Assembly: GCA_002269645.1 (NCBI GenBank)
Contig: NIVC01000698.1
Coordinates: 1-64,000 of the forward strand
From: Macrostomum lignano
Lineage: Eukaryota
DNA length: 64,000 nucleotides
Direction of reading: 5' to 3'
Each line of letters begins with the position of its first letter. The first letter of the stretch is position 1. Below, in pieces: positions 1,776 to 23,224 of this stretch. The notes beneath the pieces were generated by a model. That model saw nothing but the letters and a program-made list of their open reading frames with translations. It did no database searches and had not been told where the DNA came from. The translations under genes were made by a program, and so were the position numbers.

Positions 1776-2281
1776 TTACAACAGCCGCAGGCGAGTTTCA
1801 AAACGCCGTGAGTATTCCTCAATCACACACTTGTATGGCAGTTGAATGTCTTTGTGCACTGACAGCATTGCAAGTCCGTTCAGCCGGCTCTCGCCCGTGG
1901 TTGACCTGGTATGGGTCTTCAAAAGACAACGCATACTAAATGATCTTTCAGCTGTGCAAGTTGTCACTGGGATAGTGAGAAAGATCGTCAGTAGGTCATG
2001 GATGTTTGGCCAAAGACCCTTATTGCAGCGCTTGATTGTGTCGGAGATGGTCATGGTACTTCGCTCAGCTGATGGCAGGCTCTTACAGAATGCTTGCCAG
2101 CGTTCAAATTCAGCTAAGCATATTGCGACTGGCTCCAGAAAGAAGCTGTACTCGTTGAATGCCTCCGTTGCAGCCAGAGTGGCATCTGCATTGACGCAGT
2201 TGGCGGGTAAAAGCTTGGTCATTTTCATGGCAATCTTGGCTGATCTTGAAAAGCGCTCACTGAGCTTGGAAATGACGAGAT
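1776..2281 (-). pseudogene. Outer hAT transposase, C-terminal dimerisation region
   Basis: DLVISKLSERFS...WPNIHDLLTIFLTIPVTTCTAERSFS...LKTHTRST...RLNGLAMLSVH is the hAT C-terminal dimerisation signature. It joins in frame to 8808 when the nested element is removed. Confidence 0.92.
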
Positions 2282-3020
2282 CCAGTGCACATACATGCGC
2301 AACCTCCAAAATTTGGTCGGCCGTGCGACTTAGTTTTAACAAAAATGCGACGTAGTTTTCGGCCAAAAATGCGACTTACATGAAAAAACCTGAAAGCAAA
2401 ATTAACGCAACTTTGGGTAAACGGCAGGAGTAACTATGACTGTCTTTATTAAGGCAAAATGCTTCGTCAGCTACTTAATACTACTTTGGTATTTATTTGG
2501 GTGGGCATTTTTGCAACTTACCTTGGTTGGCCGCCAAATCAGTCGTCCATATCGGCCAACTATTGTGCATGTATGGTTTTGACTCTTGTCATTCCTAATC
2601 GTATTTGTACCCCATGTGGCACTAGAACAGTACACTTGACACGGAGTGTTTTAGGCATGATTGTACAGTGTAAGGTTGCAAAAGTGGGGAGTGGCAGAGA
2701 TACATATGTATATATAGCTGTATGGCACAGGATGGCACAAGCTAAGGCTAAGTCAATGCATGCAGCGATAAAAGCAGTCTGTAAAGCCAAATAGTGAAAG
2801 TTAACCTTAACTTATAGCACCTTGGCAGCCTATGCTGTCTGCCTGCATCTGATACGAGCATATAACTAAACTACCAAGGCAATTGGTTGTATTTACACTT
2901 ACTTTCTGTACATGAATTGGTAAAGGTAAGGGCTTTTAAATGTTTTATTTATATAGTAATACTCATAAATCAATTTTATTTTATCACCAAAATCATATAC
3001 TCGACTTAATCTTTCACAGA

Positions 3021-4652
3021 ATGATGTACAGCCTTAGTTGTCTTTGCCTACTGATTCTAAGTGGCATCCTAGCTATCAATGGTATTCTAGCTGAGAGTGA
3101 GTGCTCAATTGTTATAAATGAGTTAAATACTGATGAGCCTAATATTGGATCTCAAGAATTTTCAGAGTTCATTGAGCTGAAGAAAGTTTGTTCCACAACT
3201 GCAATGCTATTAGGATCAGTGCCAGTGAGACTCCGTGATTTTCTTCTGATTGGAGTTCAAGAATATAGCGGCGATTTTAGACGACCTGTGGTTTCATTTT
3301 CTGCTGACTTCTATCGGTCCTCGGGCTTCAAAACGGACAGCAGTTTCTTTGTTATTGCATCAAAAGAGAAGCAGGAAGCAGCAGATATGTTTTTTACCGA
3401 TACATCTATTGGGTATCAGGGAAAAACTAGACATGGGCTGCCAAGTTCCGCTCCTAGTGGATCATCGCAGTCATCCATCATTGATTTTTTCAAGTCTGCT
3501 AGTAAGACAATTCCAACAGAACCAAATGCATTAAAGAATGGGAATGGTAAAAGTGCTATGGCCATTATTCTCTTGTATCAACGAGACTTTTCTAGATCAG
3601 AATCGGACAGTTCAAGTTCCACAACTGCCAGTAGCATTGGAAAACTGCGACTAGCTAAAATGCATGCAACACAAAGAAGACCTGTTTATGAAGATAAAAT
3701 TATCATTGATAACTCATTAGCTGAAATTATTAGGAACAATGTGCATGACATGATCATCTATGCACGAAGTACACAAAATAACAGGTGCACATTTTTTGAG
3801 TCCATTTATCGTAGGCTAAGAGACAAGCCCAACTACATCTTAAAGCCAGCAAGAGAATGGGATGAACTTGGTCATGAGGACTATTCAATAAACCGGTGCC
3901 CTGAATCCAGCAGTGAGTTACGAAAGCCTTTGCTTTTTACAAGGTGGAAACTTGGACAGTTGACTCCAGGTAGAGAAAATGACTGCTCAGGTGCTCATTG
4001 GATTTTAGAGGACAATATTGAAGCCATCATAAATACACCTTCAAGAGAAGCAGGTACATTGGCAGACTCAGCATTAGCATCTGCTTCATCAGCAACAGAA
4101 AGAATCGAAATGCGACTAGCTCCTGCTCCAGCTCCATGTTCTGAAAGCTCACACCGTAGTGAATTGGCCAGGTCCTATGAATTTTCAGAGCAAATAGCAG
4201 CTAATCGAGATCATGCTGTTCAAACTGCTGCTGCAGAAACTTCTAATTTTTGCTCTGCTGCAAATGTACAGGAAAGAAGAGAGTTGTTGGAGAATGACCA
4301 GCAAACAAGCAAACTACAAGTGGAAATTATTAGGCAAGTAAATATTCAAAGACAATCAACGAAACGATCACTTTGCCAAAGTCCTATTGTTGATTTAGAT
4401 TTGAGCGACTCAAGGGGTTCAGGTGATGTTGAAATAGTACAAGTAAATACTGCAGAAGCAGGGCCATCGCAAAGAAAAATACCATGCATAAGCACATCTG
4501 CAGACGCATGTCTAGCCACTTCAGTATCAAAGCCCTCGTCTTCCTCTATGATGGGCGAAAATATTGAAGTTTTCCCTAAAAAGGACTGGGAGGATACATC
4601 TGGTTTTCGAGAGGAGTGGTTACATTCTTTGGAGATGCACCAGTCACAGTAA
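3021..4652 (+). CDS. Cargo ORF: predicted signal peptide plus lamin-tail-like extracellular domain and a low-complexity linker; 543 aa unspliced, or exon 1 of a transposase fusion
   Basis: Hydrophobic N-terminus MMYSLSCLCLLILSGILAINGILA, then IVINELNTDEP..EFIELK, NALKNG...AIILLY and DYSINRCP...TPGRENDC. These motifs resemble bacterial-type lamin-tail-domain proteins (recalled, not searched). ATG 3021 follows a GT-AG intron at 2926-3019. Confidence 0.75.
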   Translation: MMYSLSCLCLLILSGILAINGILAESECSIVINELNTDEPNIGSQEFSEFIELKKVCSTTAMLLGSVPVRLRDFLLIGVQEYSGDFRRPVVSFSADFYRSSGFKTDSSFFVIASKEKQEAADMFFTDTSIGYQGKTRHGLPSSAPSGSSQSSIIDFFKSASKTIPTEPNALKNGNGKSAMAIILLYQRDFSRSESDSSSSTTASSIGKLRLAKMHATQRRPVYEDKIIIDNSLAEIIRNNVHDMIIYARSTQNNRCTFFESIYRRLRDKPNYILKPAREWDELGHEDYSINRCPESSSELRKPLLFTRWKLGQLTPGRENDCSGAHWILEDNIEAIINTPSREAGTLADSALASASSATERIEMRLAPAPAPCSESSHRSELARSYEFSEQIAANRDHAVQTAAAETSNFCSAANVQERRELLENDQQTSKLQVEIIRQVNIQRQSTKRSLCQSPIVDLDLSDSRGSGDVEIVQVNTAEAGPSQRKIPCISTSADACLATSVSKPSSSSMMGENIEVFPKKDWEDTSGFREEWLHSLEMHQSQ

Positions 4653-4779
4653 GTAAATGGAAACTGACGAACTGTAAATTAATGTATAGTGTACTGTGTA
4701 TTGCACTTATTAGCATATTGCTTTTAGATACTCACAAATAGTCCAAATCCCAAAATATTCTCTAATTTGACCATTGCAG

Positions 4780-7163
4780 ATCATTTTCAAGAAAATTTGT
4801 GTCACAAGAAATGAAGACATGGTTTCAATATGTTCAAAACACCGAAGATCTATCAAGATCTGGAATACAATGTCGGATCTGCAGAAAATTTTTGAGTGCA
4901 CATAAGAAAAAGGAGACAAATCTAGAGAGCCAACGTAAGTTAACTTTTGCAACAGAACAAGGCTACATTCCCAAAGGTCATGCAAAAGATAGCGTACGAA
5001 GAAAACTACAGGAACATTCATCAAATACACTTCACAGTGACGCCATAAAGTGGATGAAGGAAAAACATACTTCAGTTCTTGCAAAGCAACTCAAACAGAT
5101 GAATGAGGCCGCTAGACTAGCTAAAACTAAACGAGATGAAATAACAGCCCGAGTTTTGACAACAGTTTATGCCGAAGTCAAATCTAATATTCCATTCAGT
5201 GCTCATCCAAATATAATTGATTTACAAGTAAAAAATGGGTTGGATATGGGGAGCCATCATAAGCATCGCAAAAGTGCCGCAGCAATGGTGGAATCAATCA
5301 GTAATACAATGCATCGGACATTTGTGAATTACATTAAAAGTGCTGACAATCTTCCGATTTCTATTGTACTAGATACAACGTCTGATATTCATTCAAACAG
5401 CTACGTCATGATATACTTCAGAGTTCTTGAAAACAGCCAACCTTTGATGTTTTTTTATCGGTTTAAACGTCTGACTGAAGTAGAGACTGGACGAAGCATT
5501 TATGAACTTCTCATCCGTTTATTTTCGGATGACAAGCTAGAAGATGAAATCAAACGAAGGCTATGGGGGGTGACAACTGATGGTGCATCCGTAATGACAG
5601 GAAGTCGAGTGGGATTAATAAGTCAACTGAGGCCTTGGGCTAGCAAACAATTTTTTCAGCACCATTGTGCAGCGCATAAGTTAGAACTTTCAATCTATCA
5701 TGCCTTTGAAATCTTCCCATTTATGCAACATCTCGATAAGAATATAAATTCTCTACACAAATTTTATATGAGCCACGCTGTTAAACGTAAGGCATCTTTG
5801 GCACAAACTTCGGAAGCACTCAACTTGGTTTTCTATGAATTAAAAAGAATATATCGCATCAGGTGGGTTGCATCGGAAGTGTCTGCTCTTGATGTGATTC
5901 GAAAGTCGTATTACTTGCTTCTGACAAATTTAGAAAATATCAAATCACCTTCCTCAGGCTTTGATGACGAAAGTAAAGCAACTGCCTCTGGATTATTGAA
6001 AACATTGCAAAATGTCCGGTATTATTCATTACATCTATTTCTCATGGACATTCTAAAATTACTGGAATTTGAGTCCTTGCAGTTTCAAAGAGCCAAGGGT
6101 ACATTTATTGGCTTGCAAGAACGCCACACTAACCTTATACATTCACTAGAAACCTTAAAAACGAACAATGGTCCTCGCATTGTGGACTTTTTGGCTTCCT
6201 GCAAGTGTCGTCGAGTTTTGGGAACTGCAGATGGATATCCGCAGCTGGAATACCATTCAGGATGTCACACAAGAGACCTATCTTATTCTAACTTTGCTTG
6301 TCCTTCCGGCCCTGGAAGCAGCGATCCAACAGAGAGGTTTGAGTTGAAGCAACCAGGTTCTGCTGCAGACATCTCTAAGAAATAGATTATTTGATGCTAG
6401 TGGACGTGGCAGTGTTGTTGACATGGGAGCTTATCCAGCACTGGATGAGATTCGCAGTCGAATCATTGATAGCATAATTGATCAGCTGCGTAATTATTTT
6501 CCTGAGGATGACTACTCAATATTTAATGTGCTCAACCCAGTGTTATTGCCTAATGCTGAAACATTACATACTGTCTTTACATACAGTTCGAGAATCATAC
6601 CTCTTGCTAGACGGTTTGGAATGGAAGATGACAGCTCTGAATCTGAAACAGAGGACCATCTTTCTGATTCAGACTGTAGAGATGCAGATGCTTCAGAACG
6701 CGCTACAGAAAGGACAATCTCTGGTCAGTTCGGTCTACTCCTAAAAAGTTTGATCACTTCGCATAGTGTTGACTTCTGTGCCTACAAAGGCAAAGGTCCG
6801 GTGAAATTTTGGAGTCACTTTCTAGAGACAAGAACTGTTGAATGGCTGCCCAGAATAAAGAATCTAATTATGGTTGTGTTAACTTTGCCAATATCATCAG
6901 CTGAGGCTGAAAGAGGGTTTTCTATCTATAAGCACATTGCCTATGACAGGAGAACACGCTTGGCACCAAAAACATTGGAGCATCTACTACGGATTCGAAT
7001 AAATGGGCCTCCGCTGATGAAATTTAAGCCGGATATTTATGTCAATGATTGGCTGAAAAAACACTGGCGTTCTGATGCTCCTGGAGGTCAACGGCAAAAA
7101 GAATCCAACGTAGACGAGGAAAATAAAGATTCTGATTCTGATTTGCTAAGTGGACTATTTTGA
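4780..7163 (+). CDS. Inner hAT transposase (ZNF862/C17orf113-like) with a frameshift near 6348-6385
   Basis: TTF-like zinc finger (TWFQYV...IQCRICRKF), DUF4371-type core (ISIVLDTTSD, TTDGASVMTG, HCAAHKLELS, RWVASE) and C-terminal PISSAEAERGFS...RRTRL...LRIRINGP. ORFs 4799-6385 and 6423-7163 are in different frames that overlap at 6348-6385. Confidence 0.9.
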
Positions 7164-7512
7164 AAGTTTTTTATCAGTTTTAATCTGCTACAATTTTAAT
7201 CAATTATTACAATGGTACATGCATAATAATTAAGACTACAGTTCTTCTAAGTTCATATATAAGACCGTTAGAATCTTGCAGTTTTAATTTGCTAATTAAA
7301 TATTATTAAAAGTATGATTTGCAATTGTAATAGGGCTGAAAAATTACTGCTTATAAGTTATTCTATCCCTATTTCTATTCCTTAGCCATTTCTGGCTTCG
7401 TAATTCTTAATTTTTCAAATTGATGCGTTAATGCACACGTAGCCTACACCCTAGTAAGTGATACATTAAATTCATCCTAAACTAATCCTATCCTAATAAT
7501 CCTAAAGATGCT

Positions 7513-8612
7513 CTGCGACTTAACTCAGTCCTGCTGCGACTTGCCTCGGCCCTGCTGCGACTTACTCGGTCCTGCTGCGACTTAGCTCGCCCTCGGTGCG
7601 ACTTAGCTCTCGCTCGGTGCGACTTAGCTCGCCCTCGGTGCGACTTAGCTCGGTCCTGCTGCGACTTAGTGCGACTTAGCTCTCGCTCGGTGCGACTTAG
7701 TTCGCCCTCGGTGCGACTTAGCTCGGTCCTGCTGCGACATAGCTCGCCCTCAGTGCGACTTAGCTCTCGCTCGGTGCGACTTATTTTGCCCTCGGTGCGA
7801 CTTAGCTCGGTCCTGCTGCAACTTAGCTCGCCCTCGGTGCGACTTAGCTCGGTCCTGCTGCGACTTAGCTCGCCCTCAGTGCGACTTAGCTCTCGCTCGG
7901 TGCGACTTAGTTCGCCCTCGGTGTGACTTAGCTCGGTCCTGCTGCAACTTAGCTCGCCCTCGGTGCGACTTAGCTTGGTCCTGCTGCGACTTAGTGCGAC
8001 TTAGCTCTCGCTCGGTGCGACTTAGTTCGCCCTCGGTGCGACTTAGCTCGGTCCTGCTGCAACTTAGCTCGCCCTCGGTGCGACTTAGCTTGGTCCTGCT
8101 GCGACTTAGTGCGACTTAGCTCTCGCTCGGTGCGACTTAGTTCGCCCTCGGTGCGACTTAGCTCGGTCCTGCTGCGACTTAGTGCGACTTAGCTCTCGCT
8201 CGGTGCGACTTAGTTCGCCCTCGGTGCGACTTAGCTCGGTCCTGCTGCAACTTAGCTCGCCCTCGGTGCGACTTAGCTTGGTCCTGCTGCGACTTAGTGC
8301 GACTTAGCTCTCGCTCGGTGCGACTTAGTTCGCCCTCGGTGCGACTTAGCTCGGTCCTGCTGCGACTTAGCTCGCCCTCGGTGCGACTTAGCTCGGTCCT
8401 GCTGCGACTTAGTGCGACTTAGCTCTCGCTCGGTGCGACTTATTTTGCCCTCGGTGCGACTTAGCTCGCCCTTAGTGCGACTTAGCTCTCGCTCGGTGCG
8501 ACTTAGTTCGCCCTCGATGCGACTTAGCTCGGTCCTGCTGCGACTTAGCTTGCCCTCGGTGCGACTTAGCTCGCCCTCGGTGCGACTTACCTTGTCTTCA
8601 GTGCTGCAACTT
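7513..8612 (+). repeat. Subterminal tandem array of the TGCGACTTAG motif inside the inner hAT
   Basis: About 1.1 kb of short variable units built on GCGACTTAGCTCG; the same core occurs at 2325-2380 near the left TIR. Confidence 0.9.
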
Positions 8613-8807
8613 ACAGCACTTACAACTCTTTTTGTGTTTTTCTCTTTCTCTTTGCTCCCTTTTTCTCGTTTTTTCCTTTTCCTTTCCCCTTTTTCGTCTT
8701 TTGTTTTTTCGTTTTTTTTGGCGGTTAATCAATTTTGCGACTTACTTGGTTGGCCGCCAAATCGGTCGGCCGGATCGGCCGACTCGGCCGACTGTTGCGC
8801 ATGTATG

Positions 8808-9072
8808 CCAGTGCAGGATACCAGACATTCACTTTAAAGTTCTCAAAAGCACTACCACTATGTGCATTGCTGCAATGCTGGCTGCGCTGCAAAAAAAGTG
8901 CTCTGTACTTATTCAGAATTGGCTGATCGTCATTGTGTTGCTTATGAAGTCTGTCGGCAGTTTCAAACAGCTCTTTGAATTTTGCATCCGAACTGTCACT
9001 TCGCCAAGTCCTTAGAAGTTGGAGAACTCGATCAGCCTCCTCGCTAGCAACGATGAGGTCCATGGCCTTCCC
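8808..9072 (-). pseudogene. Outer hAT transposase, exon 2 segment upstream of the insertion
   Basis: GKAMDLIVAS...FKVNVWYPAL. Preceded by acceptor TTTTCATCGTAG and cut by the inner element's TSD. Confidence 0.88.
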
Positions 9073-9422
9073 CTACGATGAAAAAAGTTGAAAATGAGAT
9101 TAGCCAAATGCACATACAAAAAATCATAAATATTAATATGACATGAACTTGACATCGTGCAGGCATATCATAATGCGTAACATTTTGCAATTTGCATGGT
9201 TCTATCTATCTAACAGACCGACAATCCAACACCCACCCTTCAGTGAAGGCAAAGTTAATTATAAAAACTAATTTTCTATTCCCTTACTTAACTAATTAAA
9301 CTTAAAGCAACTTTAATATACAAAAAGTAGCTTCAGAACTAACAAAGAATCAAAGAGCAATCAGTTAATTCCAAAAGAGCAATTAAAAATCAAATTTCCA
9401 TAAATCTGATAGAAGCACTTGC

Positions 9423-11177
9423 CTGAAATATGACTGAAAGACCACGCCTTGAACCAAGCAGTGCTTGAAGGACATGAATGCCAACAATAGTCACTGCATT
9501 GACGATGTTGTTGTACACAGACAGGTCCGCAGAATAAAAGTACTCTGCAGCCACATCAAAGACCGCCAGAAAGTCAGAGACGCAATCTATACTGTCCACA
9601 AACCGTGTTAGGCAGAATGGCTTCAATCGCATCTTGAGGCACTCTGTCTATGTGGCATCACTCTGCTTAGCCGCGACAAGTTCAGCAAACTTTTTTGTCC
9701 TGACTGCTGAATGCGAGAAGTGCTTAGATGCAGCATCAAGTGTGGCATACACACTCTTCAGTTCCCGAATGCCTCGCTTGCTGTCTACTGTTGCCCTGGT
9801 GCAAAGATTAAGACAGTGACTGTAGCAGTGGATGTAGATAGCATTAGGGCATGTTCTTCGAATTCGACCTTGAACACCACCTTCAGCACTCATAACCAAA
9901 GCACCGTCGTAGCCTTGCGCAACAAGAAGTGACTTGTCCAGTTGCAAGAGCTCCAGCTTTGCATCAATGGCATCAACAATTGCAGGAGCATCTTGTTCCT
10001 TTAGTTCTACAAAGCCAACAAAGCGCTCTTGAACATCTCCATCGTTGTTGACATAGCAAATCGTGATTGAGAGTTGCTCAGAATGTGCAATATCACTTGT
10101 TCCATCAACAATAATGGCATAGAATGATTTAATTGGCTGAACAACTGTGCAAGTCATTACAGTGTTAATGCAGTCTATTAGCCTATTTTGTATGGCAGGT
10201 GAAAGGCCAGTGGAATTGAGAGGTCTACTCTCCAAGAGACTTGCTAGTTTTTTATCTTTGACAGCATCTCTTTGAAGAAGAGCTCGCAAATTTCCTTGTG
10301 TGTAATCGACACGTTCACGTCCGTCGGGAACCTTTAATCTTCCTGCATCTTCACGATGGCCACGCAGACCCTGGTTTGTGCGCCCAAGGTATTCGATTGC
10401 CTGGATGACAGCCTCAAATATATACTGGTTATCCAGTAGGGCTACACTAGTTGATGTCTTCATTTGCGCTGACACATCAGCAGCATTTGTGGCTGCTTGC
10501 AATTCTACCTGGCGGAATGTATCACATGCCTGCTGGTGGTAGTGACAATTACAATGCTTAGTGTAAATCTCCATAATCTTCTTGAAGTTGGTAGCTAGTA
10601 TTGTTACAAGCTGACCAAGCTCTTGTTTGTTTCTCTCACCAATGCTAGTTGAGGGTGCAAAAAGTACACAAGGTAGACAGAAGACTCCCTGCTGCTTTGG
10701 TGAAAAGTAGAAACAGCTATTCACTCCAGTGAGATGATAATGGTGTAGCCTATACTTCTGCCTCATTCCCTCAGTGAAAGGAAGCTTGTAGCTCTCAGAA
10801 ATGTTCAGTACTTCTTTCATGAAAAAGCAACAATGTTCAGCAGATAGCTTGCCTTGCATTTGAAGCTGCATAGCATCGTAGATATCTGGAACAGCAATCT
10901 CAGTGGAAGGTGGTGGCGGCTTAGGTGGAGAGACAGAATTTACACTCACAGGCAACACTTCCAAAGCAGGAGCAGCAACAGGGACAGAGTCCGGGCCTAT
11001 GTACTCTGCATTTCCATCTCCATGTAAACCAGAGATAGCACAAACAGTAGCAGTAGTCGTTATTTCTATAGTTGACCTTGTAGTAGATACAGGTACAGAT
11101 GAGTTCTGACTGTGTAGCAATTGTTGCGAGAAAAAAAATCGATCTATCTTTGATTGTTTTGTTGGAGGTGGAGCCAT
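9423..11177 (-). pseudogene. Outer hAT transposase, exon 1 (TTF zinc finger plus DUF4371 core) with an in-frame TAG at 9648-9650
   Basis: FCLPCVLF, GHRE, SPAIQNRLI, FYAIIVDGTSDIAHSEQLSI, QGYDGA, IHCYSHCLNL. After the stop the same frame continues TECLKMRLKPFCLTRF and ends at a CAG/GCAAGT donor. Confidence 0.92.
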
Positions 11178-13509
11178 ACTACGAGCATATACTATAGTCA
11201 GTGCCTCCAGAATACTATGGTAGTTAAGCTAAAGTATATTTCACTTGGTGGGGGGTTGGGCCTTGGGCCTTGGGGTTGGGACTCGGGAGGGTGAAGAACT
11301 GAAGATGTACATATAAGGGTCATATATAGGATGTACAATCACAATGTACATATATGAGCGTACAACCAACTACCTTGCCCTTACCCCTCAGTCCCACACT
11401 CTGACTCTCTTCCTCTCTCCTGAGCCTCACACTCTTTTCCAAGACTAAGCCAGAGGCAAAGGCAAAACTAGGAAGGAATTTTTATTGTGCTACTCGTATC
11501 TTTCAAATTCATGTTATATTATTAGACAGTTTTTGGATTAGAATTCTGTTCAGCTATAAGAATCAAATGTAGTATATATCGACAAAATTAATAACACTAA
11601 CAGTACAGTAATCACATCAGTATCAGTATTGAATACAAACCTTAGAGATTTAGTAATTTCTTACACCCACCAACTAGGCCCACGGGGGGGGATATATCCC
11701 CATATCCCCCCTTGCCTACGCCACTGAATATGCTTAGTTAATAGTATTAGAAATCAGACAAATTTGGAATACTTAGATTTGGAATCAAATTAACCAAATC
11801 TTTAGTTTAAATCAAAATTGGAAAATTGACAATCCAAATACTAAATAATTGCTTTGATATCAGAACAAATATTTGGAAGTTGAAAGTAAAATAGTAGTAT
11901 TGTGGCTTTGAAATGATTTAATGAAATAAAGAATTGGGGATAGTTATGCTCTAAGAAAGGCAGAAAGAATAGAGATATAACAATTAAGTATATTTATATT
12001 AAGATTTAAAAAAGCTTTAGAAGTAAAAAACTTGAAAGTTTGAGTTTAAAGAGTTAAAAACGCTAGGGATTATAGGCATATGGTTTATAAATAAAAGGAG
12101 GAAATTAAGCAAGGATAGGACAACACATGGATATGATATATCTTGAGGAAAGGCAGGGGTGCTTGAGCAGTTGCAAGCTAGTTGTGCTTAGATTCAAGGC
12201 TTTAAGACAAGTGAAGCATTAGGAATTAAGTTTATATAACATAGATTCAAGGGCATTGATTCTTACAAACTTGGAAGGGTGGGGTTAGCATTGGTCTAGG
12301 CACATTTTATTAAACAATAAGTAAAGAGGATAGCCTATTGGTCAAAGGCTACTAAAGGGATATTGTTCACTAAAATATTTGTATTTAATATTATTTGGTA
12401 TTCAAATCAGAATATAATTTCAAATAGCTTGTTTAAGACTTGTTTAAGGCTATAAATAGTATTATTATATCATTTTTAATATTATATAATATTATATAAC
12501 ATTTGAACTATATAACAGTTATATAACATAACATTTAGGCTTATATATCTTTGTTAATATCTATAGATCTATGCTCATATATGCACAATACCTAGCTGAC
12601 CTAGCCAATCTAGTCAGCTGGCAAGAGGCCTAGCTAAGGTAAATTGCAAAAATATCTATCCCATAAATAATAACATATTACAAATTAGTTGATAATGTAT
12701 TTAGCCTTAAAAATACTTTTATAATTATTTCTACCATTTACCAAAAATTATGTTAATGTTTGCTTTGGGTTCTTTCATAGGTAAATTGCATTTCTGGTAA
12801 AAAATTAAGTCACATAGCTATTGTTAATCAAGGGGTTTGCACATGTATGTCTATGCTTAAATAGTAGCTTAAGGCAAACACTTGAATGTTTTAAGAAATA
12901 GAGGAGATACAATACCTAAGCATAGTCTAAGTTATTGAATACTCCTATTGCAGCCAAGGTCTAAACCATTTAGTTTCTAAACTAGGTTTAAACCATATTA
13001 GCCTTAGAATTTAAATACCAAAGGTATTATTAAGGCCCAAGCATTGATAAATGGCTATTTCTAATGAGAAAAATTGTTAGGAAAGGGCAATAGTGTTTTA
13101 TAGCCAAAGAAGGCCTATTCTTTATTATAAAAATATATAAATAATGATAGACAATGGCTTTGGCTATCTTCTTACCTAGAATAAACTAATCAAGATATTT
13201 GTTATATTAGTTTGGTTAGCTATAGTTCATGGCCTCATTGCCATTAATGTAATAATATGCTTATTCCTAAACAAAGTAGTAGCTATAAATGCTAGTCTCC
13301 TCTAGGTATTCTTCCTAGCAATGATTGACTATATTTAAGGTCTAATACAATGGGCTAGTGTTTAACTAAATATGAACTTTTATTAATCAATATTATTAAT
13401 CAAGAAGCCTTGCATAAGATTGATTGAGATTGAAGGCTATAAGATTGATTGCACTGTTGAAGACCATTAGCTCAGCCTACGTAGAGCTAATGTAATAAAT
13501 AGCTTGCTA

Positions 13510-17100: not shown

Positions 17101-20100
17101 GGTGTCTCGGTATAAAATATTCCCATTTGGATCACAGGTGCTTTAATAGAAAATATCCCATTGGGATCGCAGGTGCTATAATAGAAAATATCCCATTGGG
17201 ATCACGGGTGCTTTTATAGAAAATATCCCATTGGGATCACAGGTGCTATAATAGAAAATTTCCCATTGGGATCACGGGTGCTTTTATAGAAAATATCCCA
17301 TTGGGATCACAGGTGCTATAATAGAAAATATCCCATTGGGATCACGGGTGCTTTTATAGAAAATATCCCATTGGGATCGCAGGTGCTATAATAGAAAATA
17401 TCCCATTGGGATCACGGGTGCTTTTATAGAAATATCCCATTGAGATCACAGGTGCTATAATAGAAAATATCTCATTGGGATCACAGGTGCTTTAATAGAA
17501 AATATCTCATTGGGATCACAGGTGCTTTAATAGAAAATATCCCATTGGGATCACAGGTGTTTCAGAAAATATCCTATTGGGATCACAGGTGTTTTGGCTA
17601 AAAATATCCCACACTGACCCGAACAATCTGCCCATCTCCCCAGGTGTTCGACCGAAACAAGCTCAAAGAGTTCATAGCCGCGCAAGGCCTGGAGCGCACC
17701 GAGGCCAATATAATCCTGGGCGCGCTATCGCTTCAAAATAAAACTATTGGCGAAGTTATGCGCGGCCTCAGCGACGTGTACATGCTGCCGGCTGAGACCC
17801 TCATCGACTCCTTCACTATCGACCAGATCCGCGAGACCGGCTACACCCGGATCCCCATCTATGAGAAGGAGCGCCACAACATTATTAACATTTTGAATTT
17901 CAAAGATCTCACTATTGTTAACCGGGACACGCCAATGCGGGCTGATCTGATCTGCGAGTATTTCAACCGACAGCTGCAGATTGTGTACGATACAGACACG
18001 CTGGACAATGCGCTGAAGCTGTTCCTTAGCAACAGGATTCACCTGGCTATTGTGAAGCATCACGTTGGCGAAGAGGAAGGCAACGAGAAGGATCCTTACG
18101 AGGTCACGGTCGGCCTGGTGACGCTTGAGGACATTCTTGAAGAGATTATTCAGCAGGAGATTGAGGACGAGACTGATATTCCCGGTACTCAATACCTTTC
18201 TGGCTCCTACTCATCTACCTTTCCCTTCTCTTTTCCCCATCTGCTCTTTTCCTCCCACTCTTCCACTCTTACCCTCATCTCCCCTCTCTTCCCGGTCCTC
18301 TTCTCCCAGGTCCTCTTCTCCCCGGTCCTCTTCTCCCCGATCCTCTTCTCCCCGATCCTCTTCTCCCCCGGTCCTCTTCTCTCCGGTCCTCTTCTCCGCG
18401 GTCCTCTTCTCCCCGGTCCTCTTCTCCCCCGGTCCTCTTCTCCCCGATCCTCTCCGCGGTCCTCTTCTCCTCTTCTCTACCCGATCCTCTCCGCGGTCCT
18501 CTTCTCCCCGGTCCTCTTCTCCCCGATCCTCTTCTCCCCATCCTCTTCTCCCCATCCTCTTCTCCCCGGTCCTCTTCTCCCCGATCCTCTTCTCCCCATC
18601 CTCTTCTCCCCGATCCTCTTCTCCCCGGTCCTTTTCTCCCCGATCCTCTTCTCCCCGGTCCTCTTCTCCCCGATCCTCTTCTCCCCATCCTCTTCTCCCC
18701 GGTCCTCTTCTCCCCGATCCTCTTCTCCGCTGTGCTCTCCTCCCCTGTGCTCTCCTCCCCTATCTTTCCCAGTCCTCTTCCCCCCCCCCGTCTTCTCTCC
18801 TTTTCGCTCTCCTACCACCTGCGCTTATTTTCCTCCCTCCGTGTCTCCATCCCCTCTGCCATCTCCTTTCTGCCTAAATTCCCGCAATTCTCGCATTCAA
18901 AATTTCAGAGAATCCCACCGCAATCACTCGACAAAATGCGCGAGCTTTGAAGGGCCTGTGGAAGGAGCTGGCCTTTGGCGGCACCTCCGGCATGCAAATC
19001 CCAGTTCAGCTGAGAATGGCCGCCACCCAGAGCCTCGCTATGCGTGAGTAGAAAGTCTTTCTACATAGATATGGAAGCAGTTAGAGTTATTAAATCGTAT
19101 TGCTTTGCCCATCTGCAGTGCATAGCGACCTGTTTGGCCGCAACGTAATTATGGAACCGGTGTTGGAGAAAATGTTCGAAGAGAAAATCCTTGTGCGTCA
19201 CATGTTCATGTGAGTTGGCTTTGTTCATGCAAGTCAAAGCAAGTTTTTCTTTCTTTTCTATTTACGGTATTAGAGATAGCGTGGAAATAGAAAGAGATTA
19301 AGGACCAAGAAGGAGATTAATGACCAAGAGAAATTAATGGACAATGAAGAGATTATAATCAAGAGAGAGTATGAACAAGAGAGATTATGATCAAGAGATT
19401 TTTAACAAGAGATTATAAACATGTGAGACTATGAAAATGAGAGATTATGAAAATGAGAGATTATGAAAATGAGAGATTATGAACATGGGAGATTATGAAC
19501 AAGAGATTATGATTACAAGATTGCTTCTATTCATGACATGTTATGGCCAAGAGATTATGAGCAAGTATAGCGGAGAAAGATATTAACAGCAAAGGTCAAG
19601 TGACACCTTAGTCGCCAGCTCATTTGAGCAGGTAAATGCGCAAGCCACAATGCAGTATTTTCTATATAAATATATTTTTCAGCTACGGCGACGAGGAGAG
19701 CAACACGATATTCCGGCGCAACCAGCCGTGCGACTTTGGCATCTTCCTGCTGGAGGGCCGCGCCGTACTCGGCATCGGAGTCGAGGACCTGGAATTCGAG
19801 GCCAGCGCTTTCACTTTTCTTGGCGCCAAAGCGCTTACTGGTTCGTTTAATGAATTCTCAATTCCTATTAAGGCATTTAACCAGCTAGAGCAATTCACTG
19901 GTTCATTGATCCTTGCATTCAGAAATTTCCACAGATTCTTATTATCCAGACGAGAATTACCCAAGCTTCTTAATATCAATCCTAGAATTCTCCTCTGGGG
20001 GATAGTCTGTGAATTCCTCCAGAATCATACCCCTCACATAGTTCACAAGGGTTTTAGTACCCGTAAAAGAATTCCCCAAGAATCTTAATACCCATCCAAT

Positions 20101-23100
20101 AATTCCCCTAGAATTTTAATGCCCATCCAATAATTCCCCTAGAATCTTAATGCCCATCCAATAATTCCCTCAGAATCTTAATGCCCATCCAATAATTCCC
20201 CTAGAATCCTAATACCCATCCAATAATTCCCCTAGAATTTTAATGCCCATCCATAATTCCCCTAGAATCCTAATGCCCATCCAATAATTCCCCTACAATC
20301 TTAATGCCCATCCATAATTCCCCTAGAATCCTAATGCCCATCCATAATTCCCCTAGAATCCTAATGCCCATCCAATAATTCCCCTAGAATCTTAATGCCC
20401 ATCCAATAATTCCCTCAGAATCTTAATACCCATCCAATAATTCCCCTAGAATCCTAATGCCCATCTAATAATTCCCCTAGAATTTTAATGCCCATCCAAT
20501 AATTCCCCTAGAATTTTAATGCCCATCCAATAATTCCCCAAGAATCCTAATGCCCATCCAATAATTCCCATACAATCTTAACACCCATCCAATAATTCCC
20601 CTAGAATCTTAATGCCCATCCAATAATTCCCCTAGAATCTTAATGCCCATCCAATAATTCTCCCAGAATCTTAATGCCCATCCATAATTCCCCTAGAATC
20701 CTAATACCGATCCAATAATTCTCTCAGAATCTTAATGCCCATCCATAATTCCCCTAGAATCCTAATACCGATCCAATAATTCTCCCAGAATCTTAATGCA
20801 CATCCAATAATTCTCCCAGAATCTTAATGCACATCCAATAATTCTCCCAGAATCTTAATGCCCATCCAATAATTCCCCTAGAATCTTAATGCCCATCCAA
20901 TAATTCCCCTAGAATCTTAATGCCCATCCAATAATTCCCCTAGAATCTTAATGCCCATCCAATAATTCCCCTAGAATCTTAATGCCCATTCAATAATCTC
21001 CTAGAACCTGAAACTCATGCCTCCACAAAATCTTTATATTTTTTTAAAATTTCCCAAGTCTTGCAAGCTTTAGGGGAACCTACGATTACAATTCCCACAG
21101 AATATCCCTTTTTGCACTCGAGAGCCCCCACTAATCCCAAAACAATTCCCCTAGGAGATTTACAGTATTTCTCCACAGGCAAAAATGCTGCTCTGCTCTC
21201 CAATTTCCCTCTGTTTTCCTTTCAATCCCATTCTCCCTTCCTCTTTCACCTGCGCCCTACATTAACAATAGCCGAATAGCTTGCTTGATTGCAGCGAGAG
21301 AATGTTCATCTTCAAGGCGAGGAGAAGAAGAGCAGAGTGAATGCAATCTGAGTGTTCTCATGTGCGCATGTTTGGGCGTGGCTGATTTGCGCCTCGGTGC
21401 TGTACCTGAGTTCGCGCTGGATTCGAAAGGATTAATAGATGGGGTGGGTGGCCTGCAGGGGATACAGAAGCCTACCCCTTGCTTTGCCGCGCGTGTGAGG
21501 TGGGATTCGATTCTTTAATCCCCGACCGAGTTCCCTACTAATCGGTGTTGGATTTCACTCCAATTACCACCCGGTTGGGTCTAAATGCGATTTTCTATCA
21601 AAGGCAGAGAAAAATTGACGCAGTGTCTCTTGTCCAGTTGAAACCTGTGTCCACGCATGCATGGGACGCTTCAATTTGGGTATTAGCATCTAGTATAGAA
21701 AGCCTTTTATTCAATACTGTACAGAGTTTATGTCATCTTTTTCTCTGTGCATTTCACATTCTCAGCATTGCAGCTTAGTCAGTGTCCGTGGTACCCATCC
21801 GAGAATTCCCCTAATGGTACTAGTACCCATCCGAGAATTCCCCTACGGTACTAATACCCATCCGAGAATTCCCCTAATGGTACTAGTACCCATCCGAGAA
21901 TTCCCCTACGGTACTAATACCCATCCGAGAATTCCCCTAATGGTACTAGTACCCATCCGAGAATTCCCCTAATGGTACTAGTACCCATCCGAGAATTCCC
22001 CTACGGTACTAATACCCATCCGAGAATTCCCCTAATGGTACTAGTACCCATCCGAGAATTCCCCTAATGGTACTAGTACCCATCCGAGAATTCCCCTAGG
22101 ATTACTAATACCCATCCGAGAATTCCCCTACGGTACTAATACCCGTCCGAGAATTCCCCTAGGTACTAATACCCATCCGAGAATTCCCCTACGGTACTAA
22201 TACCCGTCCGAGAATTCCCCTAGGTACTAATACCCATCCGAGAATTCCCCTAGGTACTAATACCCATCCGATAATTTCCGTATTGTATTGAATTGACACT
22301 CATCCGAGAATTCCCCTTATGGTACTAATACCCATCCGAGAATTCCCCTAGGTACTAATACCCATCCGAGAATTCCCCTAGGTACTAATACCCATCCGAT
22401 AATTTCCGTATTGTATTGAATTGACACTCATCCGAGAATTCCCCTTATGGTACTAATACCCATCCGAGAATTCCCCTATTAGGCTACTAACCCATCTGAC
22501 AATTCCCCTAGGTACTAATACCCATCTGACAATTCCCCTTGGGTACTAATACCCATCCGAGAATTCCCCTAGGGTAGTAATACTAATTCAAAAGTCAGTT
22601 AACACCCAATTTTTAAGAAAAATTACCAAGTACTTTAAAAGTCCACAACGGTACAACGCCCCCCCCGGCATTGCAGCCGTGCTTGAACTGCACAGGCGCA
22701 GTCCCGACCGCGTCACGGATCCAACCGAGCTGCGCCGCCTCGTCCAATTCGTGCCCGACTACACCTGCAAGGCCAAGCAGAACCTGCAGTACCTGAAACT
22801 GTCGCAGGCCCAGTACGCCACCCTGCTGCGCATCTCCGACTCGCTGCGCGACATGTGCGCCACTGCAGCCGCCGCCGCCGCCGCGTCCGCCGGTGCACCT
22901 AGCGACCTCCTCGGACCCGGCGAGCTGGACGAACGCTTGAACGCCCTGTTCGCCGCGCACTTCCCGCGCCAGCGCGGCCAGCCAGCCGGCGTCAGGCGGC
23001 CGCACTCGCATCATTCGCTCAGCGGCGGCGCCGCCGCTAATCGCCTGCTGTCGACGGCCAGCCTGGACAGCGGCGGCGCTGGCGTCGCTCAGCCGACAAC

Positions 23101-23224
23101 TCCGACTAGCGTCGGTCCGGCTGGCGATGAAGCAGCTGGTGGCACCGCCGCCTCGGCCGCGGCCGCTCCGGCTGTCCAGGTCTCAAGCCCGTTGCTAAGT
23201 GTCAACGGTGAAGTCGAGACTTGA
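14149..23224 (+). CDS. CNNM: CNNM/ACDP (cyclin M, Drosophila uex-like) metal transporter, 7 exons, about 817 aa
   Basis: Exons 14149-14716, 16386-16798, 17644-18184, 18909-19043, 19119-19209, 19683-19840, 22677-23224; all introns GT-AG and phases consistent. Signal peptide, [15 protein letters not shown] (DUF21/CNNM TM domain), CBS pair ([30 protein letters not shown]) and CNBH domain ([20 protein letters not shown]). Confidence 0.93.
14850..15720. repeat. 33-bp minisatellite, CNNM intron 1
   Basis: Unit TTGAGATGAGCTGAAATCTCACTGCATCTTCCA; explains the spurious [14 protein letters not shown]. Confidence 0.95.
16180..16380. repeat. 20-bp minisatellite ending at the CNNM exon 2 acceptor
   Basis: Unit ACTGATCTGGTCCCTGACTC, about 10 copies, running into CTTACCATAG. 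Confidence 0.95.
16865..17610. repeat. 35-36-bp minisatellite, CNNM intron 2
   Basis: Unit AAAATATCCCATTGGGATCACAGGTGCTATAATAG. Confidence 0.93.
18280..18780. repeat. 15-bp polypyrimidine minisatellite, CNNM intron 3
   Basis: Unit TCCTCTTCTCCCCG(G/A). Confidence 0.9.
20085..21000. repeat. 31-bp minisatellite, CNNM intron 6
   Basis: Unit CCCATCCAATAATTCCCCTAGAATCTTAATG. Confidence 0.95.
21790..22580. repeat. 30-31-bp minisatellite, CNNM intron 6
   Basis: Unit CCCATCCGAGAATTCCCCTAGGTACTAATA, related to the 20085-21000 unit. Confidence 0.95.

Follow-up and report, generated by a model that had tools for sequence, protein, structure and literature searches.

A young hAT transposon copy from Macrostomum lignano whose family encodes a transposase preceded by a secretion-type leader and a new N-terminal module

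Introduction

In this study, we analysed a stretch of 64,000 nucleotides from the flatworm Macrostomum lignano (contig NIVC01000698.1, positions 1 to 64,000; hereafter the window), which carries a DNA transposon of the hAT superfamily at positions 2290-8807. We consider this element, which is nearly intact but carries a frameshift, to be a young copy of an autonomous-type hAT transposon from an apparently undescribed clade, a reading to which we give a probability of roughly 0.8. The element would have one gene and one polypeptide, of approximately 1337 amino acids (aa) in the family consensus and 1313 aa in an intact sister subfamily. From its N-terminus, the polypeptide would consist of a hydrophobic leader, a module of about 320 aa, a disordered linker that usually holds a basic cluster of the RKRR type, a WE(D/T)T..F...W motif, a BED-type C2H2 finger, a Hermes-like DDE core and the hAT C-terminal domain. 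The mobile-element machinery is that of an ordinary hAT transposon, and the N-terminal extension of approximately 550 residues is what sets the element apart. An initial annotation of the window, made from the letters alone, had already proposed that a signal-like leader, a folded domain and a hAT transposase share one polypeptide, and this architecture proves to be conserved, under selection and widespread.

Gene structure

The initial annotation had described a leader intron at 2926-3019, a start codon at 3021, a hydrophobic start and the motifs INELNTDEP..EFIELK, LKNG..AIILLY and SINRCP..TPG..N.C (NDC in the sequence), all of which are present at these positions or within the frame that begins there. 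A second, GT-AG intron (CA/GTAAGT at 4648/4649 and TTGCAG/A at 4779/4780) joins this first open reading frame (ORF1) in frame to the transposase exon, reading HQSQ-SFSRKFVSQEMKTWF, with the split codon CA/A encoding Gln. Support for this junction comes from a subfamily that is 72% identical at the DNA level (copies L034, L036 and L037), in which both exons align without gaps and GTAAG and AG stand at identical positions and in the same phase. The intron between them is 104 nucleotides long in that subfamily vs 131 in the window copy (58 of 104 positions identical, 27 gap columns), and conservation returns exactly at the acceptor. The spliced reading frame of L034 is intact, and the proteins of intronless relatives run colinear through the junction, with no change in spacing.

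The ratio of nonsynonymous to synonymous substitution rates (dN/dS) between the two subfamilies is 0.16 for the N-terminal module, 0.14 for the transposase and 0.41 for the linker, and the lowest value of the gene, 0.055, is found at the junction itself (40 codons, aa 521-560). When the module is compared with a closer relative from a Logan assembly, the value is 0.17. The N-terminal module is as constrained as the transposase.

The putative leader intron lies in the 5′ untranslated region, between a GTAAGG donor at 2926 and a CACAG acceptor that ends at 3019, one base before ATG 3021. Both the 72% subfamily and a related Logan contig keep its donor, AAAG/GTAAG; the sequence between the splice sites is rich in indels, and upstream in-frame ATGs are not conserved. 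The contigs of homologue P0151 stop inside an intron and contribute the conservation of the donor site only.

A protein of about 1330 aa, as proposed for this copy, is found for the family consensus, in which the spliced reading frame continues for 1337 codons, but not for the window copy, because a private 2-bp deletion breaks its frame. Five other copies read GCAGACAGATC, whereas the window copy and its duplicate on contig C1051 read GCAGACATC and lack the two bases AG after 6370. In the window copy, ORF2, the frame of the transposase exon, ends at 6385, so that the spliced product stops after 1077 aa, and from 6348 the hAT C-terminal domain is read in a different frame. Across the region of the deletion, the reading frame of the 72% subfamily is open. 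A short intron at 6338-6368 that would bridge ORF2 and ORF3 was rejected, since the other copies show a 2-bp indel there.

The fusion in other elements

An exhaustive HMMER search with ORF1 retrieved 171 clusters of homologues at 50% identity. Approximately 18 of them are proteins of 1000-1250 aa that also carry hAT domains and align end to end with the spliced protein. Such an alignment from end to end was obtained for 19 fused proteins, and at least 18 fused clusters, the most distant at about 25% identity, keep the same order and spacing. The arrangement thus recurs both in the 72% subfamily and in other families. In P0013, the fusion is an uninterrupted ORF of 1147 codons on a contig of 4,625 bp whose ends are 43-nucleotide inverted repeats; this contig is a complete single-gene transposon. 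For the relative L046, the terminal inverted repeats (TIRs) are 43 nucleotides long. P0066 is a single intronless ORF of 1133 codons within a genomic contig of 77 kb. The intronless elements contain one ORF and no other gene.

Many other hits are stand-alone proteins of approximately 350-400 aa, and all of these end at the WE(T/D)T..F motif; exon 1 of the window copy ends about 13 residues past it. They are most simply explained as exon-1 calls by gene finders that ignore introns. No stand-alone host-gene version of the N-terminal module was seen among the genome and homologue matches, and the nearest short transposase homologues (743-846 aa) gave no match to a hidden Markov model (HMM) of the module, which appears to define a clade within this hAT group. 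We conclude that the module is an integral and selected part of the transposase and neither a cargo nor a separate gene.

Two loci show other arrangements. L035 (G000:C616:102500-112000) is a diverged derivative with about 54% aa identity, in which the ORF of the N-terminal module is followed directly by the subterminal repeat array and the transposase part is missing. In the 77-kb contig, from ENA, a 286-codon ORF (L045, 5085-5945) lies 55 bp upstream of the fused ORF of P0066, which has no obvious hydrophobic leader. Possible reasons are that the start of P0066 was called wrongly, that an exon lies upstream, or that this family has another kind of N-terminus.

The transposase

Membership in the hAT superfamily is established. 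The alignment of the fused proteins contains invariant D198, D267, C296/H299 and R361(W) in ORF2 numbering, an invariant C-x2-C...H-x5-H with a conserved W before it, and SADAERGFS with the third acidic residue. A search of the PDB with a profile of the fused proteins returned Hermes as the sole match, and this match includes the Hermes C-terminus. The AlphaFold model of window positions 4781-6367 has a mean pLDDT (predicted local distance difference test) of 83.4, and its top 11 Foldseek matches are all Hermes (E 2e-8 to 2e-6, with probability 1.00 at E 2e-8). In the model, the BED-type finger takes the form of a hairpin plus helix, although Pfam zf-BED was undetected at E<=1. The hAT dimerisation family PF05699 matches window positions 6843-6998 with E 1e-7 (32.1 bits, cut-off 21.4).

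In addition, the relatives P0013, P0021, P0066, P0156 and P0157 match DUF4371 (PF14291) and PF27073, mostly weakly, whereas the window protein has no match to these families at E<=1. These matches suggest a placement near ZNF862, ZBED5 and FAM200.

The N-terminal module

According to the AlphaFold model of the N-terminal part, built with 60 homologues (pLDDT 83.9; pTM, the predicted template modelling score, 0.84), a helix at residues 2-24 is followed by a seven-strand beta-sandwich half with a disordered insert (29-186) and by an alpha/beta half (200-345). Residues E34, E52, D243, N291, C293, G312, P316, N320 and C322 are invariant in 36 homologues; in the set of 60 sequences, only E34, E52 and D243 are strictly so. 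Conserved cysteines occur at 28, 57, 256, 293 and 322, with two more in the linker. They are single and far apart, a spacing that would be compatible with disulfides.

Searches for relatives of the module gave little. Pfam returned no match to it in the window protein (E<=1), in ten homologues (hAT parts only) or in the family consensus (E<=10), and NCBIfam gave only noise over the 60 homologues. A sequence search of the PDB with a profile of the module found nothing, and Foldseek found no match for its model at E<=1e-3 in the PDB or BFVD. The best Foldseek matches were generic immunoglobulin (Ig) V domains, at E 0.01-0.1 and with poor TM-scores. On these grounds, we dropped a viral envelope or fusogen origin (no match at this threshold in BFVD) and a clear assignment to the Ig fold or to the lamin-tail domain (LTD; no such match in either database).

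The resemblance to lamin tails that the initial annotation had noted is not established as homology. The LTD family PF00932 matches 5 of the 60 homologues below threshold (best E 1.1e-3), and none reaches the gathering score. One of these matches aligns residues 20-64 with HMM positions 4-44, and one scores 17 bits where the cut-off is 34.3. Over the whole genome, PF00932 found the lamin exon only, and lamin tails were not among the best Foldseek matches. We do not file the module as an LTD, and a remote kinship of its first half is possible. Outside these elements, no relatives of the module were detected. It represents a new domain family of about 170 clusters (50% identity), for which the predicted model is confident.

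The hydrophobic leader

The window protein begins with the hydrophobic sequence MMYSLSCLCLLILSGILAINGILAES (Kyte-Doolittle maximum 2.9, 19 uncharged residues, helix predicted at 2-24). Its n-region has no basic residue; many homologues start with MK or MR. For a comparison among homologues, we took the 83 that start with Met and contain the x-INE-h-N motif, and scored a leader when at least 9 uncharged residues with a mean hydropathy of at least 1.5 lay between the Met and the motif. Fifty of the 83 passed, vs 15 of 1000 internal control windows (1.5%), and many of those that failed have runs of 7-8 residues or look 5′-truncated. The runs have a median of approximately 10 residues, are often preceded by K or R, and end 2-8 residues ahead of the first conserved Cys. 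Between subfamilies, the leader diverges and is hydrophobic throughout. Judged by this pattern, the leader behaves like a cleaved signal peptide and not like a structural helix or a membrane anchor. A membrane-tethered topology, with a stop-transfer segment between the module and the transposase, was rejected because there is no second hydrophobic span.

Of 66 homologues, 50 have a basic cluster, typically RKRR or RKRK, at most 60 residues upstream of WE(T/D)T; the commonest distance is 14-17 residues. This is the position at which a nuclear localisation signal (NLS) of the transposase would be expected.

Mobility of the family

Perfect 14-bp TIRs form the two ends of the element, and an 8-bp target-site duplication (TSD) flanks it. 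Our genome scans covered a eukaryotic assembly of 764 Mb, in which similarity to other genomic copies sets in at 2285-2290 and ends at 8807. A distinct 8-bp TSD surrounds each of five other insertions and also a miniature inverted-repeat transposable element (MITE) of approximately 293 bp. Genome-wide, 1,422 matches to the 44-nucleotide left end were counted, most of them in a variant with a single mismatch, whereas the reversed control pattern occurs once. At least 20 copies of ORF1 are 99-100% identical. The family moves by cut-and-paste and leaves 8-bp TSDs behind, and the 1,422 left ends together with insertions that have their own TSDs show a hAT family that has been very active in this genome. 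The approximately 1,400 left ends suggest a large MITE population driven by the family, a hAT/MITE system with recent activity.

Two copies, L038 (G000:C1009) and L040 (G000:C20), have two defects in common: codon 260 is a premature stop (G>T at window position 3798), and a 504-bp deletion (6729-7232) takes out the hAT C-terminal domain. They represent a non-autonomous sub-lineage and, being disabled and yet flanked by their own TSDs, were therefore mobilised in trans.

Discussion

To our knowledge, cut-and-paste transposases are treated as purely nucleocytoplasmic, and the N-terminal additions known for them are DNA-binding or chromatin-related. The element described here has the 8-bp TSD, short TIRs and, putatively, the BED-type C2H2 finger of Hermes and of the hAT superfamily (the DUF4371/PF27073 FAM200-ZBED5/PF05699 group), as well as the RNase-H-like DDE core with a large helical insertion, CxxH and RW, and the C-terminal hAT domain with the third acid. 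However, in known hAT transposases the BED finger lies at the N-terminus or close to it, whereas here approximately 550 residues (leader, module of about 320 aa and linker) precede it. The domesticated genes ZNF862, ZBED5-9 and FAM200 match the same Pfam families (DUF4371, PF27073 and PF05699) as relatives of this transposase, and extra N-terminal domains fused to a hAT core are known among domesticated hAT-derived genes. Those are single-copy host genes that lack TIRs and whose additions (KRAB, SCAN) are nuclear, unlike the present multi-copy elements with TIRs, TSDs and a secretory-looking module. LTD proteins, including secreted bacterial and invertebrate ones, share with the module a predicted beta-sandwich and the order I-x-E-h-N ... 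E-F-I-E-L ... L-x-G-Y, but the module, at three times the length, also includes a second half that bears cysteines. A signal-peptide-bearing protein is also found in other selfish elements, the gypsy/errantivirus Env and the fusogen-carrying Mavericks, although there it is a separate gene of a virus-like element with capsids, and here the signal-like leader is on the DDE transposase itself of a plain cut-and-paste element that has no further gene. In the open-access full-text literature, we found no description of a hAT transposase with a signal peptide and such a module, in agreement with the initial annotation, which knew of no hAT family with this architecture.

The clade is widespread and evidently successful, and its only protein opens with a secretion-type leader, followed by a disulfide-type module under constraint equal to that on the catalytic core. 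Two alternatives are implied. Either the life cycle of these elements includes a step that has gone unrecognised (routing through the endoplasmic reticulum (ER), processing, dual targeting or delivery between cells), or the module represents a new class of accessory domain in the nucleus, one that mimics secreted proteins. Because the leader resembles a cleavable ER signal in its sequence hallmarks and the cysteines of the module would fit disulfides, entry into the secretory pathway is probable for at least part of the protein. Molecules that avoid translocation and reach the nucleus by means of the basic cluster would then provide the nuclear enzyme. That ER entry is real for a functional fraction is a tentative proposal, which we hold with somewhat less than even confidence.

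Several observations weigh against our reading or parts of it. To work, a DDE transposase that carries a BED finger and an NLS-like cluster has to get into the nucleus, and efficient translocation into the ER is at odds with this. This paradox could be relieved by partial or inefficient translocation with dual targeting, by processing, by a nuclear role in which the leader is unused, or by something stranger. In the window family, the basic cluster is weakened (RKI for RKR). The alignment of homologues contains no conserved N-glycosylation sequons, and four proteins (P0018, P0066, P0090 and P0130) are fused but have no obvious leader, through either mis-called starts or real losses. The leader was called by hydropathy heuristics, and both introns are predicted from the sequence. 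Furthermore, each young copy that was sampled has its own disabling indel or stop, so that the current autonomy of the young family is unproven, although some of these indels lie in homopolymers and could be assembly errors.

A plausible alternative, which we judge only slightly less likely than ER entry, is that the module is solely nuclear or cytosolic. It would then be an accessory domain that binds DNA, chromatin or a host factor or serves in oligomerisation, possibly of remote LTD kinship, and the leader would not be used as a signal, being buried, weak or bypassed. The presence of a BED finger, a DDE core and a frequent NLS-like cluster on one chain agrees with this view, as do the demonstrable mobility of the family, the lack of conserved sequons, the homologues without a leader and the weak LTD-profile matches over the INELN..EFIEL region in 5 of 60 homologues. 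However, LTD was retrieved neither by the family consensus nor by the fold search, and single, distant cysteines are typical of disulfides and not of zinc sites. Moreover, a leader that varies in sequence but is always hydrophobic, short, exactly N-terminal and placed before a conserved Cys has the pattern of a cleaved signal.

Our preferred reading of one gene and one polypeptide must also be set against the possibility of two products, as in Harbinger elements with an accessory protein. Retention of the coding intron would end ORF1 at the TAA within the donor GTAAG and give a secreted protein, and the transposase would start at ATG 4811, which the initial annotation had suggested as the start of the real enzyme. 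The stop within the donor and Met-4811 are both kept in the two subfamilies, and many database predictions consist of ORF1 only and end at the WE(T/D)T motif. However, the TAA is part of the consensus donor, and the ORF1-only predictions, which all end at this exon boundary, look like intron-blind calls (P0151 likewise continues through the leader intron). Upstream of ATG 4811, the 10 codons that follow the acceptor are conserved and free of indels and align with coding sequence of the intronless relatives, in which the Met is replaced (R, N, K, I or F in other families). Together with the minimum of dN/dS at the junction and the single ORF of the intronless elements, this makes two products unlikely and speaks against ATG 4811 as the start of the enzyme.

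If the single polypeptide is in part secreted, the transposase might act cell-non-autonomously; somatic cells would secrete it, and after uptake into germ cells, or into other individuals or species, it would mobilise the resident copies there. Germline silencing of its own messenger RNA would then be avoided, and the Cys-bearing module would be the part for export, uptake or receptor binding. A secretion signal combined with a basic cluster of the nuclear-import type is characteristic of proteins that one cell makes and that act in the nucleus of a different cell, such as exported parasite effectors. A signal peptide and an NLS occur in one protein in PTHrP and in parasite effectors sent to host nuclei, and the secretion-type leader and internal basic cluster of the present protein resemble theirs by analogy, with no homology. 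We regard such intercellular action as very unlikely, if conceivable.

Finally, capture of host fragments occurs in some hAT and other DNA transposons, and the module has no relatives among known transposase domains, but the view that one lineage picked it up as a host exon (transduplication) and carries it passively, without function for the element, or the mobile cargo or one-off capture considered in the initial annotation, is contradicted by the conserved order and spacing across fused families, by purifying selection equal to that on the transposase, and by its presence in intronless single-ORF elements while no host gene version was seen, and we consider it highly improbable.

Additional features of the element and the window

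Table 1. Coordinates of the features of the element in the window.
Feature	Position	Strand	Basis or remark
Target-site duplication, left copy, CCAGTGCA	2282-2289	.	Same 8-mer at 8808-8815
Left terminal inverted repeat, CATACATGCGCAAC	2290-2303	+	Perfect inverted match to 8794-8807
Left-end unit, like the ~293-bp MITE of the family	2290-2577	+	89.6% identity to the TSD-flanked ~293-bp element in L034
Putative leader (5′ untranslated region) intron, GTAAGG...CACAG	2926-3019	+	Boundaries read in the sequence
Start codon and exon 1	3021-4648	+	543 codons
Start codon and signal-peptide-like hydrophobic leader, aa 1-25	3021-3095	+	Hydropathy
N-terminal module, aa 26-345	3096-4055	+	Beta-sandwich half (~aa 29-186) and Cys-bearing alpha/beta half (~aa 200-345)
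Low-complexity linker, aa 346-522	4056-4586	+	dN/dS 0.41
Weakened basic cluster SQRKIPC in the linker	4467-4487	+	RKR/KKKR at the homologous position in relatives
WEDTxxFxxxW...HQS motif, end of exon 1	4587-4648	+	Kept in fused and exon-only homologues
Predicted phase-2 GT-AG intron between module exon and transposase exon	4649-4779	+	Same position and phase in L034, L036 and L037
Transposase exon, in frame until the deletion	4780-6370	+	Invariant columns, AlphaFold2, Foldseek; dN/dS 0.14
BED-type finger	W 4820; C 4871, C 4880, H 5015, H 5033	+	Invariant columns
Catalytic D 5372 and D 5579; CxxH at 5666; RW at 5861	within 4780-6370	+	Invariant columns
2-bp (AG) deletion site, frame shifted in this copy	6370-6371	+	Comparison with other copies
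C-terminal transposase part, out of frame	6371-7163	+	hAT dimerisation region 6843-6998; SAEAERGFS with third catalytic acid 6897-6923; stop 7161-7163
Subterminal tandem array, 21/42-bp units, ~48 TGCGACTTA motifs	7513-8589	+	Tandem Repeats Finder
Right terminal inverted repeat	8794-8807	-	14 bp, pairs perfectly with 2290-2303
Target-site duplication, right copy, CCAGTGCA	8808-8815	.	Same 8-mer at 2282-2289

All 51 copies of the TGCGACTTA motif in the window lie inside the element and on the plus strand, where 0.3 would be expected. Most of them are in the array of approximately 1.1 kb, the length of which differs among copies, and these subterminal repeats are likely candidates for transposase-binding sites. 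The motifs of the array have the same orientation as two copies at the left end; the repeats of the two ends are direct and not inverted. The left end itself has TGCGAC(T/G)TA subterminal motifs at 2324-2378; farther in, at 2513-2577, it contains a degenerate copy of the right end, with a degenerate TIR at 2562-2575. The left 290 bp or so are thus built like a MITE, with a left end and a degenerate inner right end, and a TSD-flanked MITE is found near the L034 copy (L034 2116-2416).

The element was inserted into an older hAT transposase gene on the minus strand, of which ORFs remain at 1776-2375, 8725-9072 and 9648-11228 with matches to PF05699 and DUF4371. The frame of this older gene (window positions 1776-2289 and 8808-11228) is cut exactly at the TSD (YPAL/DLVISKL), such that one hAT element is nested in another. 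The copy on contig C1051 (L031, G000:C1051:36000-45500) has the same 2-bp deletion and matching flanks, with window positions 2201-8900 aligned, and is probably a haplotig or a recent segmental duplication and not an independent insertion. On the minus strand at 12836-12849, the sequence CATACATGTGCAAA matches the 14-nucleotide TIR with two mismatches and may be the end of another family fragment or MITE. Positions 17602-23224 of the plus strand contain the exons of a CNNM-like metal-transporter gene, with a CBS domain and a CNNM2-type C-terminal CNBH domain, which is apparently an ordinary host gene.

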